In this document: one piece after another, positions 18,543-27,572 of the stretch
How the letters are laid out: each line of letters starts with the position of its first letter
Numbering within the stretch: position 1 is the stretch's first letter
Origin: Trichoplax adhaerens
Lineage: Eukaryota; Animalia; Placozoa
Assembly (NCBI RefSeq): GCF_000150275.1
Contig: NW_002060949.1
Coordinates: 395,861 to 459,860, forward strand
Reading direction: 5' to 3'
DNA length: 64,000 nucleotides
Made by a program: the position numbers and the translations under genes
The notes under the pieces: model-generated
The model's database searches: none
What the model was told of the DNA's origin: nothing
The model's input: the letters and a program-made list of their open reading frames with translations, nothing else

Positions 18543-20301
18543 GTCGACAGCCAGATAGCATATAATCTAGAAAAATTGAAAATCTTTTACGAATTTCATA
18601 GTGAAAATACTATATTATAATAAAGTTGCAGCAATTTCACTGATATAACTGTCATAACAGATTTGAATTTGTGCTCTACAGGAAATCGGATTACTGGTTA
18701 AAAAGCAAACTGTAGGCTTATCTCATGTAATCTTCGATAATTTTTATTACTGCTTTCCATGGGAGCGAGATTTGAAATTTGGACGAGAGTGTTCTGGCAT
18801 TTGGTGATTATTGTCGAACGTTTGCGCGGGCACGGGCGCCATAATTAGCACTAATGTCAGTCTCTGATACATACTATCGGACAGTACGTTAACTTTGTGG
18901 CTAGTTAATGGTGTTACATGCATTTTTATTTTAAAGTTAAAAGTATTGAAGAGTGAGTACGTCAGAGTTTAACAGTTCTTTTGAGTGGCATTAGAGTACT
19001 TGATGGTAGTTAAATCAATGAACAAGCAATTGTAAATACAAACGTATTATATAACCAGAAACAGGATAACGGGCTGATTCGTTGAGTAGTAATAATTTAA
19101 GATTATAATAGATATGTGGTGTTATAGTCGGATATGAAAAGATAATAGAATTCCGTACAGTATTTATACATCTTTTTAAGACATTAATCAATTTATTAAG
19201 TTCGATGAAGTTTCAGACAACAGTTTGTACATAATCTCATCCGTTAATTGAGCATTATATCGAGTTAAGCTGACAGCGAGGGAATTACGAAGTGGGTCAT
19301 GAAATTCCCTTGATCTAGCTACATGTATTGTTTTTAGGGGCTTGAAAGAAATCCTGATCTTCTCACAAAGTGATTTCGTTAAATATTTAATGCTTGGCCT
19401 TCACATTTGGAACTAGTACATTTGCAATATACTAAACACTGCACCGAATACCTACGATCGAAATTTTATAATTACGAGTGTACAACTGTAGTACCGTATA
19501 AGTCTTTGCAATTAATTGCGATTATAGTATAGCAATCTTTAGAAGGCTTATAATGCATAAATAAAGGAAAAGACATTACGAAATTTATTGTCCAATGAAC
19601 ACCATTGCAGAAAACTAAGCCAAGAATCTCAGGTTTTAAGTATTCATAGGTACAATTGAACAGGACTTATAAGGCTTTAATTAAGTTAAGAGTTCACCTG
19701 TAAAGCTGATATGGTAATTCATTACGAGTACAGTATGGATATTATTATTGTATTGGGGAATTTTATTATTCAAGATACGCATAAATGTTTAGTTTTGAAG
19801 GCTATCTACAGTTAGAATGGTATCTTACGCTAGCGACGTTTGGACCTTGAGAAATTTAAAAAGATGAACCCACACACTGATACAGAGTGTAACTCTGTAT
19901 AGTGAAATCAAATTGATCCCACTACAACATTAATTAAAACATCAAGAACACACTGTGTGCACTATACGTGCAAAGCCGGTTGATTAAGTACAGTACCGCA
20001 CTGAATTCAGCCGATTCATGTTAAAATAAAATATTTAAATGCTATAAGACCGTTACTATAAAGCGCAGGATTTTAAAATAACTTAATTACCTCTACTTAC
20101 GCGATGTAACCAGCGTAGACAGTGTACTTTCACAGTTTAGATGAATTGAGAAGCTGCCGAGAAATTCAATTAAACTACCCAAAGTCTGAAATAGTTTTTA
20201 ATTCTGTATTTGCAGTTAAATAACAGTCAATCAAAATTCCGCAGCTACCGCTCGGGTCTTAAAGCTTTTCAAATCTATTGCCGCGGATCTTTACTCCTCG
20301 C

Positions 20302-20832
20302 TACAGTACCGCATACTGTACACTACAGTACAGTATACTGTATAGTACAGTACAGTACATCGTGCCAATGTTGCCAACCTCTACTGTACAGTACCGTACT
20401 GTACTGTACGGTTCAAGATAACTTACAGTATTGTACTGTACAGTATGCAGACGGCTGATCCTGATTTTTCTAAATTAACAGTACAGTACTGTACTGTACT
20501 GTATGTACTGTATAATAGTACATTGAATCTTATTATTGGTTACTAAAGCTCTTCTTAGAAACAGCCATATAAGATCGTCAATAGTGATATAGAAAACCGA
20601 GTCAGAAGATCCATACTAAGCAGTCATTTTCGATATTGACGGTTTCGTTTGGTGAAAGAAGTCCGTCCGTCTACAGTATATTAGAGACCTTTACTAAATC
20701 TACAGTACTGTACGGTACTGTACAGTACAATATACTGTACATGTACAGTATACAGTATTGTACAATGTACAGTACAGTACAGTATGATAGTACAGTACTA
20801 CGGTACAGTGTACTGTACAGTACAGTACAGTA
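20302..20832. repeat. TACTG/CAGTA array in the divergent FZR1 / PTP-receptor promoter
   Basis: Two dense blocks (20302-20520 and 20700-20832), followed by (AAT)n, ~100 bp before the ATG at 20935. Confidence 0.85.
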
Positions 20833-20934
20833 TACCATAGCAGTAACAATAAAGTAATAATAATAATAATAATAATTAATTATAATGTAATTTTATGCAC
20901 GTACTATATCTTTATATCCTCCACTTCGGCGAAG

Positions 20935-23900
20935 ATGTCAAGGATTTTAAATATTGGCTTTGGTTTAGCCTTTATTGTAATCGTGTCCATTACAGGTTTG
21001 TTAATAATTATTATCGCTAATATGGCTGAGATGGAATCGTAGACGTCTAGCTATTCATATTTCGGTGTGGATTTCATTTGATAAATAACCAGTTTAAACC
21101 GGCAAATGTGCAGGAGTGCAGGTGTTTTTTTTTAGCTATGACTGAACCTGCAAATGCTGAAGATATCGTCTTTTCAGTTTCTTAAAACTTACTTAATTAA
21201 AAATCCAGGCTAAAAGGCTTAGTCAACGTTCGAATATGCAACACTGGTGTTGATTAACACCGTAGCTCGGAGACGCTTATTACGACATTGAGTAATATGG
21301 TAGACGTAGTCGTTGATTAGTGGGATAAGACATTTTGTTTTGATAGTTAATTGAACTTACGCATACTGTAAACGAATTTGCACATAATATTAGTATCAAT
21401 AATAACGCCATATAGTGAAATGCAAGAAAAAGTCATGGCTGTATTATTGACAATGAATATCGGTATACAGAATGAAACATTTTACGGGAAGTTGATCTAA
21501 TTTTACTACCTATAGCTAATAACTGCCTGTGCACGAGCCGTCCAGTAAATGAAGGATACAGCACTGTAGTAGCACTGTTCATGATTTCCGGACTTTAAAC
21601 ATTACAGTCTATTTATGCCTGTAGGCAAGTTATTTTGTGCGCTTATACTCTTCGGATGATCGCCTATCGTCGTAAGCTACTAATTTTGAATCTCTGAACG
21701 CTGCACTTCTGCAAGTACGATCTTACTGTGCCGACAGATTCATGTTGATCCTTGTGCTGTACTAGTAGCTAGTTGTCAAATGACTATACCGATTAATTTT
21801 GATGATAGTTTTTCAATCTGCGGGCAAGCACTGTACCGTACCGGGGACAACGAGTGAAATACGTGGAGACGCGGAGTAGTGTTTGAGTAGATTATGTAGT
21901 TATGAATGACTGGATGAGTGGTCTGTACTGTAAGTAAGGTAGTACAGTACGTGCTCTTAATATAACTGCAAATGGAGTAGCGCCATAATTTACGTATTTT
22001 TACGTATCAAGTACAGCACAATATTTATCCATCCCCTATGACTTACTGCTGATAGGTTCAAGTCATTGACTACCAAAAAAGACCTTTTTCTAGCAGTCCT
22101 GGTTAATCCTGCTGTCCCACTGGTAATTGTGGTGTAATTATTGTAAAGTAGATTCTTCTTATCCTGGACAAACTGCGAGCTATATTATACGTGTATGTTC
22201 CTTATATCAGCATTAACAGTAAATTAATTATGAAGTTTTCTGTAGTATTCATACTAAAGTATAATGTAACGCTATCCTTCGCACAGTAGGCGACGGTGCT
22301 GCTTCTAGTTGATCCCAATATATTTCATAACGTATGTTATATCGCACGGGGTTAGACCAGCGCTGGTGAATTGCTTTGCGTTGAATAATGTCGAAGAACG
22401 TTGATTTTCCCTTGATACTCTTTGAATTTATATGTTCTGTAGCTGCATCATATCTTCAATTAACCTAAATATAAATTTGCAGAACTGTATTAGTCCTTTT
22501 TTGCGCTTGGATGCAGCAGATAATATTTCCGAAGTAAATAATACGCGATCTGGAAAATCAGTTATGATCTTACTGACAACTAATATCCCTTTTGGTTTTA
22601 TTATAATTATTCATCAGGACATTGTACAAGAGGTCTCTCTTTGTATTGTTCTTATCGCCTGCCGATGGGCTTTGATGAGGATGACTTTTACTCTATTAGA
22701 TGCTGGACTAACAATGATAATACAAAGTTTACTTGGTCTAGAGTTTCATCTCGTGTATCGCCTTTTCATGTCAGCACGGATCAGTATCAGATACAGAATA
22801 AGTCCGGTGAATCAACATTAATCTTGCCGTGGAATTCTCTAAACGATTTTTATCGTTACGCTGGTGTATATGAATGCCAAGCAACAAGCACAGCCAGTAA
22901 TTCTCCCCAAAGGAAGACTTTATGGGTTGGAGTTACTCATTCTGCATGTAAGGGTATATTTAATTTCGACCTTTTAATTAATGCATTAACGATTTCAGTT
23001 GTGATATATTTAGATCTTAGAAGCCGTTAACACCTCTGTTTTTAATTATTTATTTAGCTCCTGTACAGCCATCAATTATTTCACAAGTTGGCTATGTTCG
23101 CGATACCTTAGTGTTAACCACGTTATCGAATAATGTCGTAACTTGTAATTATATATGGTACCACAACGGCTCACGTTATACCCGATGTGACAATGCTTGC
23201 AACTGTAGTTTTGATAGCTTGAGATTACAAGATGCCGGAGTTTATGAAGTGATTTATCCGGCATCTGACAAATCTAATATTACTGGTGCTTTTATGACAT
23301 TAACTGTTTTAGGTAAGTTACGCGTACAGTACATCGGAAATATATACCTTGGAATCTCTGCTCTTCTGGTATTAGTTTATTTTATTCTTTACAGAGAAAA
23401 AATGTAGCCAAAATCAAAACTGCCTCAACGGAGCCATCTGTATGACAGACAATAGTTGCGGTTGCCTTCCAGGCTTCAATGGTACTTCGTGCCAGACAGG
23501 TTAACTGTAAATCTACAAATGTCATTCATTCTGTTATCACATGATTAAATTGCAACTAGATACGCTTAAAGCTTATCATTAAAGGACAATCTCTATTATT
23601 ATTAGCTTGCAGTCTTCCGTTTCGTTGTGGGCCTGCATGCCAATTTGCTTGTCAGCCAGAAAGTGTGTACTGCAGTTCCGATATGTATGGGTGTATGTGT
23701 CCATCTGGAGTAACTGGCATTAGCTGTAAAACTGGTAGGTTGAGGTTTTTTGAAACTGCCTGTAGACAAACAGGCGGTATTAAATAAATTATGTAATACT
23801 CATTTCCTGTCGTAAGAATGAAGGTTATATTTTAATATTAGATTCGTGTCCTGCTGACAACTATGGACCAAATTGTCAACTGAAATGTAATGGGTGTAAT

Positions 23901-26900
23901 AATCATGGAAGCTGTCAGTCAAAGACGGGTTGTTTGTGCCAGTCTGGATACTCTGGAATCTACTGTGAAGAAGGTTATTATTATTTTCTGTGTTAATAAA
24001 AAAATTACTGCTGCGATGACTGTTTCTTCGATTTCTAAATCCTAATTAATTTAAACAGTTGCAGGCGGTTCCGTAGTTGTTATAATTGGTGTCGTTGTCG
24101 CAATTATTGCTGCTGTTAGTTTAGGAGTGATTGCTTACATTTGGTACAGGTATCAAACGTAGTAGATTACAATACTGAAATTGTTTATCAACTGTTTCCA
24201 GAAACCAAATTAATGCTAATTTATTTTGCAGCCGTCGCCGCGCTAGAGCTTTAGCTAATATCAAATCACCAGATCCTGTCGTCATTGTTGATGCATCTGG
24301 TGATAATCCATCGTCCTTAGATACTAATTTAATCCGGTCACGATTAGGACAGTATAAATACGTAGTATCCAAAGGTAACTGTTACACGGAGAAAAGTTGC
24401 ATAATTTGGTCGATACGGCTTACAGTAATACCTCTATGTCGCTTGTACATTTTAGCGCAAAAGGCATCATTGGTTCAAAATATTAAGATCCCGACTAAAC
24501 CTATAATTGTTAAGGATCTGCTTGATCGTATTAACGCTTTGAAGGAAGATTCGGCTCTTGCTTTAAAGGAATTTGAGGTGAGTAAATTTGGAACGGTTGC
24601 TTTGATATAAAGTGGCATGACTGCATTCATTCTCCTTGCTCCTATAGTCCATCCCTCCTTGTAAAGAGACCCATGCTATTGCAGACATGAAAGGGAACGC
24701 GAAAAAGAATCGTTCTCAAAGTGTTATTAGTTGTACGTTTATTAATTATATAATATACAGTAAACGTCCAATTTTTTATTTACGATATCGGTGATCCTAT
24801 TCATCAGATTAAATGATTTATTTCCTAGATGATCATTCAATCGTCACAGTCGGCGATGGAGGAGTCAATTCGTATATTAATGCTTCTCATGTTCATGTTA
24901 GTAAAGATTCCTTATAATGATTCATAGTAGGGAACAGAAAGCTTTTTCTAATGCTTTACTGATTTAACAGGGATACATGAAACCTAATGGTTACATAGTA
25001 ACTCAAGGTAATTGCAATTTATCCTGGCGGCTAAAATTAAATTGCATATATGGCTTGAAGATAATTTCGAGTTATTAATCAGTTAATCGTAAAGATGGGT
25101 AGATTGTTAGATAATGTTTCCCAGGATTAGCTAAATTTAGAACTGACTATGAAATTAGGTCCTCTAAAGTCAACATGCAATGATTTCTGGACCATGGTTT
25201 GGGAAAAGGAAACCTGTGCAATAGTGATGCTCACAGAGTTATCTGAGAAGGACGAGGTTAATTATTCAAAAGGATTTGATTCTTAGGTTTATAAATTTAG
25301 GCCAAATTTGCCTTACGTGTACCTGTTAAATTTTTTCAGCAATTATGTTACAAGTACTGGCCAGAAGAAAAGGATACTTATGGTAATGTATGTGTCACTC
25401 TAGAGAACGTAAGCAAGAGGAGCTGTTATACAGTCAGAACTTTTCATTTGCAAAAGGTAGTGTATAACCTTTAATACTGTTACGTGACATAAACTTTCTC
25501 TAAATTAGTATTTGCTCCAAAACTATGCAGGTTGGAGAAGTAGAAAAGCAAGAAGTGAAACAGTTTCACTTCACTGCTTGGCCCCACGGTGGTATACCTG
25601 AATCCAGTACAGGGCTTTTTAGATTTAGGTCACTGGTACATGCTTTTAACCCCTCCGATGCTGGTCCTATCGTTATTCATAGCAGGTATGGCATATTACC
25701 TATACGCCTTTTGATCTTATCTTAAGAATGGTGATTTTCATTTATAGTGAAGGAAGTAGTCGTTGTGCTATGTTTGTTGCACTCGATATCAATCTTGACC
25801 GCGCCCGCAAGCAAGGTGATATTGATGTTTTAGAAAACGTTGGTTTGATGTCGCATCATCGAAAAAACATTTTAGTCCGTGTTGTAAGTGACGTTGTTCT
25901 TCATAGATAGCTTTGTCTGAACACCACCATGATCATTTGTATTTAAGGCCAGTAAGAATTTTTGTTTCTGTATTGATTTTTCATTTCAGAATGAATACTT
26001 ATTTGTATACGAAGCAATACTTGATGCTCTAATACGAGGCAATACGCAAATGTCGCTTAAGAATTTGCAAACCTTCGTAAGCCGGGCAGATACATCCGAA
26101 TCGGGCTCCAAAAACAATCCTTATACCATCATGTTTCAGGTAACATACCAAATGAATTAGATTAGTATCGAGATTGCTATTAGTATATGCGAAATCAGCC
26201 GATGAATATTTAAGCTACGTTTCGTTTTGGTAAAGTGCTTACGATGTCAGGAGGGAGAACATGATGATTTCGCTGGAGCTTCGTTATCTGCAAATGAAAA
26301 CAAAAATCGTTTTCCTGATATCTTAGCTAGTAAAGTCCTTAAGTCTAATATTCTAAAATAGGCAGTTTTCATTTATATTTATCGTTGTATGAAAGTGTAT
26401 CAGCGTTAATAATTATATATTTTATGACTCAGGGGATAAATATAGGGTTAAACTTTCAAGCAGTGACAGCTCAGACTATATAAATGCTGTATTTATTGAC
26501 GTAAGTTTTGTGATGATGCTGTACTATGCAACATTTATTATGCTGCTAGTTGATGTGATGTAATATTAGCAAAACACTTATTACAGAGTTACTTAAGAGC
26601 AAGAGAATTTATTGTCACCCAATATCCACTACCGAATACTATAAATGATTTTTGGAAATTAATCATGGAACAGAACGTTGCGTGTGTTGTTACCTTGGGA
26701 TCATTTAGTAATCATCCGGTAAACTTATTTGATTTATGTTTTATTGAAAATACATGTAGATAGCTAATCATTTTTATAACATTGGTGCTTCTATAGCCTT
26801 ATTGGTGGCCTTCTAATAAGAAGCACGACGTATACGATAACATTAAGGTTGAGATTTTGGAAGTAGCGACGGTAGATGACCTAACTATAAGACAATTAAA

Positions 26901-27572
26901 GGCAACAGAGAAGGTTTAGTAATTCCATTTACCAGTGATTCGATTTATTCATGCGTTTATTCATTACGATGTTATCTGATTATCTTTTCTTAGAATCATT
27001 CTAAAACTAATATAATGAGCCAATTTCAACTCAGTGGTTGGGAAGATGAGGATAAAGCGCCAGCCCAAGCTTCTACGATTATTAATTTAGTAAATCGTGT
27101 GCAAGAATGTATAAAAACAGTTCGCGAACCAGGACCTATTGTTGTTCAATGCCTGTACGTTAATATTACAAGCACAATACATTTTTACATTAATTTGATG
27201 TTGAGCTATAGGTAATGCTGTCTTAGTTTCATTTTATTGTTTATAATTATAATTCGCGTATGTCATTAACAGTAATGGCAGAGGACAAAGTGGAACTTTC
27301 TGCACGATTTACTCTGCGTTGAATACGGCGATTGAAGAAAAGGCTGTTGATATTTATTCTGATGTCCTTTCAATGAGAGTAGCTAGACGAGGATTAGTTC
27401 AGTCAGAAGTAAGAACTTATGCTGCGTCTTTTGAAGAGCTGATTTATCAGCCGAACTATTTTCAGTTGCTGATAAATTTCCATTTTGAAATGAATTAAAT
27501 TTATTTTAGGAGCAGTTACGATTCTGTTTTGAAGTTGTCGTGAAATACACTCAAGATACTGGATTGCTGTAG
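20935..27572 (+). CDS. Receptor-type PTP-like protein: signal peptide, 2 Ig, 3 EGF (Tie-like), TM, tandem degenerate PTP domains (~23 exons)
   Basis: Signal exon 20935-20995. Ig1 22618-22947 (YAGVYECQA). Ig2 ~23058-23312 (IWYHNGS...LQDAGVYEV). EGF exons at ~23394, ~23607 and ~23842. [27 protein letters not shown] followed by RRRR. D1 motifs [60 protein letters not shown]2 motifs [41 protein letters not shown]. Ends [16 protein letters not shown]. Confidence 0.9.

Follow-up and report, generated by a model that had tools for sequence, protein, structure and literature searches.

Does the ligand-binding head of the Tie/TEK receptor tyrosine kinases occur in an early-branching animal on a phosphatase scaffold? 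The question is raised by a receptor gene on the plus strand (positions 20935 to 27572) of a 64,000-nucleotide stretch of Trichoplax adhaerens DNA (RefSeq assembly GCF_000150275.1, contig NW_002060949.1, positions 395,861 to 459,860), hereafter the window, from whose first letter all positions are counted. The initial annotation of this locus recognised an ectodomain of two Ig-like and three EGF domains on a protein tyrosine phosphatase (PTP) receptor, took it for the Tie ligand-binding module and drew an analogy with VE-PTP. We consider it highly probable that the locus is an intact and selectively maintained type I receptor gene, assembled from generic Ig and EGF modules and two apparently dead PTP domains, and that its likeness to Tie lies in the domain order and in the class of its EGF repeats, since the modules themselves (Ig2, EGF2 and EGF3) are generic. 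Shared descent of the ligand-binding module with Tie/TEK is not demonstrable.

The coding modules follow one another as a signal peptide, Ig1-Ig2-EGF1-EGF2-EGF3, a single transmembrane (TM) helix and two PTP-fold domains, carried by short exons with GT-AG introns in an AT-rich window (GC 0.29-0.37). Ig1 fills exon 2 (22618-22947; 109 full codons, canonical B- and F-strand cysteines) and Ig2, of the C2 type, exon 3 (23058-23312; 84 full codons), while the EGF modules occupy exons 4 to 6: EGF1 (23395-23499) is an ordinary six-cysteine EGF, EGF2 (23606-23734) a divergent eight-cysteine EGF that contains a motif of 11 residues, and EGF3 (23842-23973) an eight-cysteine EGF of the MEGF/SCARF/Tie class. 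All five exons are bounded by an AG acceptor and a GT donor and are in phase 1 at each end. No further ectodomain exon follows EGF3, from which an 85-nt intron leads to exon 7 (24059-24149), where a hydrophobic run of 29 codons encodes the TM helix; the basic stop-transfer signal (RRR) stands in exon 8 (24232-24374), which starts with RRRAR and continues as the juxtamembrane segment. The phases run unbroken from EGF3 across these two exons to D1, the first of the PTP domains (several exons, 24456-26139), with neither a stop nor a start signal on the way from the TM/juxtamembrane exons to D1, and the second domain (D2, several exons, 26236-27572) ends with the stop codon TAG (27570-27572). Pfam Y_phosphatase was matched by four exon pieces of D1 and three of D2, seven in all, on the same strand, and no kinase was matched. 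The peptides quoted in the initial annotation were all found in the plus-strand translation where it had placed them, and its description of an Ig-Ig-EGF-EGF-EGF ectodomain on a phosphatase-type rather than a kinase receptor was borne out by the five phase-1 exons and the TM helix and two Y_phosphatase domains that follow them.

The same chain of exons was recovered from a related species, represented by four contigs of raw assemblies. Two of them (L005 and L006) were reached through P0001, an open reading frame (ORF) fragment of 108 residues with 75% identity to Ig2, found when Ig2 was searched against 1.8 billion representative proteins; the other two (L028 and L029) through word-index searches in which Ig1 and the D1 P-loop exon were the queries. 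With candidates limited to 0.55-1.75x the query length, all that these returned were exon-sized ORF fragments from the related species. L028 has the signal peptide, Ig1 and Ig2, L006 covers Ig1 to EGF3, the single contig L005 runs from Ig2 to D1 and the single contig L029 from the TM exon through the last part of D2, and together the four tile the gene from signal peptide to stop with the exon order unchanged. Nucleotide identity between the window and L005/L006 reaches 73-81% in the exons (73%, gap-free, for Ig1 in L006; 81% for the TM exon in L005) and 49-55% in the introns; gaps come only in multiples of three in the exons and are numerous in the introns. The dN/dS ratios by exon range from 0.10 to 0.22 (exon 1, 0.22; Ig1, 0.18; EGF2, 0.17; Ig2, 0.13; EGF3, 0.10), all cysteines are conserved, and the juxtamembrane exon, conserved in both L005 and L029, is also under purifying selection. 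Frameshifts and internal stops are absent from the exons of the gene. Because the exons are conserved with triplet gaps whereas the introns have diverged, the Ig/EGF exons are real coding exons and not chance ORFs. A check set beforehand was that the Ig exons should be part of the PTP gene, and as far as genomic evidence shows they and the EGF exons belong to it, since the phases connect and the exon order is kept in the contigs of the related species (L005 alone spans Ig2 to D1).

The 5' end of the ectodomain could be placed by the same comparison. Exon 1 (20935-20995; start codon and signal peptide, 20 codons plus one base, phase-1 donor ACAG/GTTTGT) was, in a blind scan, the strongest hydrophobic ATG-initiated upstream candidate with a phase-1 GT donor, and its ATG context and donor are identical in both species. 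Within the 1.6 kb that precede Ig1, a single island is conserved with respect to L028 (20932-21001; 75.7% over 70 nt, E 1e-8). As this only conserved upstream island is the signal-peptide exon, the mature ectodomain is exactly Ig-Ig-EGF-EGF-EGF.

On the cytoplasmic side, both PTP domains depart from the catalytic consensus. In D1 the KNRY motif reads KNRS (Tyr to Ser), the WPD loop reads WPH (Asp to His) and the P-loop has HS-SEGSSR in place of HC-SAGxGR (read as IHS-SEGSSR, the nucleophilic Cys being changed to Ser), while the P-loop of D2 reads VVQC-LNGRGQ-SG, with the catalytic Arg changed to Gln. The substitutions in both domains are identical in the related species (L029). Judged from these residues, both domains would be catalytically dead, and phosphotyrosine binding seems doubtful, because the KNRY tyrosine is lost as well. 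In searches of the PDB, the WPD-loop exon of D1 came closest to D1 of PTPsigma (70.7 bits) and LAR (66.7 bits), ahead of PTPalpha (56.4 bits) and PTPRB (27 bits), and the D2 exon was nearest to D2 of PTPRG/PTPRZ, these exon-sized queries being too short for assigning a subtype. The genome itself (searches covered 105.6 Mb in 1414 contigs) holds no close PTP paralogue, its other PTP exons being at most 42% identical to the D1 exon. The cytoplasmic region is that of a tandem-domain receptor-type PTP (RPTP) and not R3/VE-PTP-like; since the subtype signals of D1 (LAR/sigma) and D2 (PTPRG/PTPRZ) disagree, we claim no orthology. The proposed analogy with VE-PTP falls on the same ground, VE-PTP having one PTP domain and PTPRB scoring far below PTPsigma on the D1 exon. 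A published survey, moreover, did not find an R3 RPTP in Trichoplax (PMC5336234).

Given that PTPsigma and LAR resemble the D1 exon more than its paralogues in the genome do, the gene could be a remodelled type IIa (LAR/PTPsigma) RPTP, in which the Ig pair would be a LAR remnant, the FN3 repeats would have been replaced by EGF exons and catalysis would have been lost later. LAR-type receptors also begin with Ig domains, which agrees with such an origin. We nevertheless hold it to be unlikely: LAR-family Ig1-Ig2 structures have been solved and could have been matched in the PDB, yet neither Ig1 nor Ig2 retrieved a LAR-family chain, the D2 exon leans towards PTPRG/PTPRZ and not LAR, and the D1 signal itself comes from a query too short to fix a subtype.

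Homology and fold tests of the ectodomain were run exon by exon. For Ig1, Pfam gave weak matches to I-set (E 0.007) and Ig_3 (E 0.03), both under the curated cut-offs, and the Tie-specific family PF10430 (Ig_Tie2_1) was not reported even at E<=10; a scan of the whole genome with Ig_Tie2_1, made without a positive control, gave zero matches. Tie2 was not matched by Ig1 in the PDB sequence search. Ig1 is present as a single copy, and paralogues of Ig1, Ig2 and EGF2 sought in the same genome were not found.

Ig2, whose counterpart in Tie binds angiopoietins and on which the proposed ligand-binding function would depend, fell into no Pfam family, and its sole phmmer match in the PDB was sidekick-1 (E 0.99). 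Its 140 matches among the 1.8 billion proteins were, apart from the orthologous fragment P0001, long proteins of the multi-Ig type; the seven that we scanned all consisted of Ig_3/I-set repeats, and two of these had a bacterial secretion tail. A regular-expression screen of the 140 revealed kinase, PTP or eight-cysteine EGF motifs in none, and none of them combined a Tie-like length with alignment at the position of Tie Ig2. When these matches were aligned, their consensus showed Y-Q-W-x-x-N-G and D-A-G-x-Y-x-V-x-V. The QDAGVY motif with a non-cysteine F strand (quoted as DAGVY..Y in the initial annotation, which saw it as Tie-like) therefore marks a large class of cysteine-less Ig_3 repeats. 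The language-model neighbours of Ig2 were I-set/Ig_3 clusters. An AF2 model built from a 21-sequence alignment reached pLDDT 81 (a single-sequence run gave an unusable pLDDT of 43), and its top Foldseek matches were myomesin, neuroplastin, titin, Fc receptors and CD22, while the best VIA-align matches were FceRI, RAGE C2, CEACAM1, Dscam and CD22 (Z 10.2-8.8); VIA-align gave 173 chains at Z >=8, and Tie2 chains were absent from the 50 best listed. Sequence and model together thus describe what is probably a generic C2-type, cysteine-less Ig_3-like domain.

Two further features of Ig2 and its class were observed. The domain lacks the F-strand cysteine and carries, besides the B-strand cysteine, an extra C-x3-C-x-C cluster after the C strand (23163-23215); all four cysteines are kept in the related species (4/4), and the extra cluster suggests a non-canonical disulfide arrangement. 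The cysteine-less DAGxYxVxV class of Ig repeats is found across bacteria and animals, and P0003 and P0010, among the best matches of Ig2, are bacterial Ig_3-repeat proteins that end in a sorting tail for type IX secretion.

The EGF modules do carry a Tie2 signal, of a kind that generic repeats share. EGF1 was recognised by Pfam EGF (5e-5), had WIF1 as its top PDB match (7.6e-7) and matched Tie2 only at E 0.08, the match aligning to Tie2 EGF1. EGF2, a spacing variant with a shorter C1-C2 and a longer C3-C4 interval, had no Pfam match, and its only PDB match at E<=10 was Tie2 (E 0.1; best stretch 13.0 bits, on Tie2 EGF2 residues 249-277). This match is marginal and not robust: it was lost with a two-species profile (A1), which retrieved nothing from the PDB at E<=10. 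Elsewhere in the genome, a multi-EGF gene unrelated to this one has an EGF that aligned to EGF2 with 19.4 bits and 44% identity, and the language-model neighbours of EGF2 were EGF_laminin/PEAR1L-type clusters (score 0.88). EGF3 was matched by Pfam EGF_2 (2e-5) and has the spacing of the MEGF/SCARF class (eight cysteines, a C-x8-C-x3-C lead-in and a C-x-C-x8-C tail); its top PDB match was Tie2 (1.5e-11), with a gap-free best stretch of 26.6 bits on Tie2 EGF3, and SCARF1 was matched as well.

Multi-EGF genes of the same genome carry repeats 45-58% identical to EGF3, and two such repeats served as controls. One (L010:1501-1623:-) matched Tie2 first, at 2.6e-13 and with 32.6 bits on Tie2 EGF3; the other (L008:1501-1629:+) matched SCARF1 first and Tie2 second (2.7e-8). 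Since generic repeats of the same genome match Tie2 as well as EGF3 does or better, the EGF3-Tie2 match is a class-level one, with Tie2 standing in the PDB as the best representative of the eight-cysteine EGF class. The searches, run by exon, thus gave the outcome that the initial annotation had named as refuting its proposal, namely generic matches and an Ig2 free of Tie-specific likeness. The idea that the ectodomain is the Tie ligand-binding module found no footing in Ig2, EGF2 or EGF3, and the proposed tie to fibrinogen-domain ligands is likewise unsupported.

The multi-EGF genes deserve a brief description of their own. Two of them (G000:C1409:702600-705550, L013/L017; G000:C1413:2784880-2787250, L015/L019) pass directly from a signal-peptide-like start to runs of eight-cysteine EGFs and have a SCARF/SREC-like look, one repeat having SCARF1 as its best PDB match (2.3e-12). 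The third (G000:C1409:3935060-3940450, minus strand, L014/L018) is a long MEGF-like gene in which calcium-binding-type EGFs precede at least 12 consecutive eight-cysteine repeats, one exon each; one of its repeats is the control that matched Tie2 at 2.6e-13.

True homology with the Tie head would mean that the Ig1-Ig2-EGF1-3 block is a very divergent descendant of the module ancestral to the Tie1/Tie2 head, which would have acquired a kinase in one lineage and PTP domains in another, with only EGF2 and EGF3 keeping a faint positional signal. The domain order is the same, EGF2 finds Tie2 as its only PDB match, EGF3 aligns to Tie2 EGF3 without gaps, and even the weak Tie2 match of EGF1 falls on Tie2 EGF1. 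We judge this descent very unlikely all the same, as a Tie signal was absent from Ig1 and Ig2 by every method used, the EGF2 match is nonsignificant, disappears with the two-species profile and is equalled or exceeded by that to an unrelated EGF of its own genome, and the match of EGF3 is equalled or surpassed by generic repeats. Besides, EGF1 has six cysteines against the eight of Tie2 EGF1, no third Ig or FN3 domain follows the EGFs, and no other extracellular modules of phase 1 are as common as Ig and EGF, so that the same order can arise independently.

We stress that several points weigh against the reading that we favour, namely a receptor of generic modules with two apparently dead PTP domains. 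The tests, run exon by exon, bear on single domains, whereas the Tie ectodomain is really defined by how its entire head packs. The one structure that EGF2 retrieves is Tie2, and it does so on Tie2's own EGF2; EGF3 aligns best, and gap-free, to Tie2 EGF3, with which it has a short G-C-x-C loop in common; and the order Ig-Ig-EGF-EGF-EGF is, to our knowledge, otherwise known only from Tie. The chain of exons, in turn, would follow from phase, conservation and colinearity, and the loss of catalysis from the residues at the active sites. That the locus instead holds two genes (a small Ig/EGF/TM adhesion gene and an N-terminally truncated PTP gene) or a decaying pseudogene, as the catalytic residues missing from both PTP domains and an exon chain read from genomic DNA and not RNA might allow, is exceedingly improbable, given the matching phases, the absence of any stop or start signal where the TM/juxtamembrane exons lead on to D1, the single contigs of the related species that cover Ig2-D1 (L005) and TM-D2 (L029), the purifying selection on all exons, cytoplasmic juxtamembrane included, and the lack of frameshifts and internal stops, with catalytic-site substitutions that are the same in both species.

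The ectodomain is assembled from single-domain exons of phase 1-1, the classic substrate of exon shuffling; such exons by themselves do not diagnose kinship with TEK. The domain shuffling put forward by the initial annotation is thus upheld in one part, these exons being of the easily shuffled kind, and not in the other, namely that a Tie module was what was shuffled. We reason that the protein may act as a non-catalytic receptor whose Ig/EGF ectodomain makes contact with a ligand or, in adhesion, with an adjacent cell, and that its dead PTP folds may serve as docking or regulatory modules, by analogy with other receptor pseudophosphatases and with inactive D2 domains.

The Ig-Ig-EGF-EGF-EGF architecture is unusual for a receptor PTP. 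We know of no receptor PTP of well-studied animals that has EGF modules in its ectodomain, nor of any in which a degenerate D1 is combined with a degenerate D2, and a literature search for receptors like Tie, or for RPTPs with EGF modules, in non-bilaterians brought up no relevant work. The locus illustrates exon shuffling cleanly in an animal of an early branch, with the whole gene under purifying selection; it adds to the variety of receptor pseudophosphatases known so far, and experiments in a simple animal could look for its ligand. It supplies no evidence for a pre-bilaterian receptor of the Tie/angiopoietin type. Were homology with the Tie head true, a Tie-type extracellular module would predate the bilaterians and, in placozoans, would have been placed on a PTP scaffold that lacks catalysis. 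For similar findings the controls advise caution, as they indicate that any EGF repeat of the MEGF type gives a top PDB match to Tie2.

A few observations concern the sequence around the exons. Just 5' of exon 1, degenerate TACAG/GTACT pentanucleotide arrays (20301-20835) yield long pseudo-ORFs of the 'TVQYSTV' type in several frames and look like a noncoding microsatellite. Two upstream candidates were rejected: a start at 22230 (MKFSVV...), which misfits in phase and is absent from the conserved sequence, and a mini-exon at 22483-22533, which is unconserved and in the wrong phase. The 81-nt intron that separates exon 8 from the first PTP exon (24375-24455) is in frame and stop-free, and its retention would add 27 residues with the protein unbroken; its sequence is little conserved in the related species, with 49% identity and numerous gaps, so that an ordinary intron is the likeliest reading. 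On the same contig, 150 kb and 73 kb away, lie two other PTP-domain exons (G000:C1408:268235-268381, minus strand; G000:C1408:345674-345817, plus strand), which are 34-37% identical to the D1 exon and may form a loose PTP gene cluster with the present gene.

Set beside known systems, the gene shares with the head of Tie2/TEK and Tie1 (PDB 2GY5/4K0V) the succession of two Ig and three EGF domains and the eight cysteines of EGF2 and EGF3, and Tie2 is the top PDB sequence match of EGF3 and the only one of EGF2. It differs from Tie/TEK in lacking the third Ig domain and the three FN3 repeats that there separate the EGFs from the membrane, in having PTP domains and no kinase, in the six cysteines of its EGF1 (eight in Tie2), in an Ig1 that does not match Ig_Tie2_1, in an Ig2 that is un-Tie-like in sequence and in its modelled fold, and in an EGF similarity that does not exceed that of generic MEGF-type repeats. 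With MEGF10, PEAR1 and SCARF1 it has in common the eight-cysteine pattern with the C-x-x-x-Y-G-P-x-C lead-in, seen in EGF3 and less clearly in EGF2; unlike them, it has only two such repeats, Ig domains before them, no EMI domain and a PTP-like cytoplasmic part.

Among phosphatases, the tandem RPTPs (type IIa LAR/PTPsigma, R5 PTPRG/PTPRZ and R4 PTPalpha/epsilon) show the same type I topology, juxtamembrane segment and pair of Y_phosphatase domains, whereas their ectodomains are Ig-FN3, CA-FN3 or a short stub in place of Ig-Ig-EGF-EGF-EGF, and their D1, degenerate in the present gene, is active. VE-PTP/PTPRB, named in the initial annotation as a regulator of Tie2, is likewise a receptor-type PTP, but as an R3 member it combines an FN3-only ectodomain with one PTP domain, against Ig/EGF modules and two PTP domains here. 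The dead phosphatases of the IA-2/PTPRN and STYX type resemble the present gene in a PTP fold kept under selection with its catalytic residues replaced, which implies a possible role in binding or scaffolding; IA-2, however, combines just one PTP domain with a lumenal domain of unrelated type, whereas the Trichoplax gene joins two such apparently dead domains to an Ig/EGF ectodomain.

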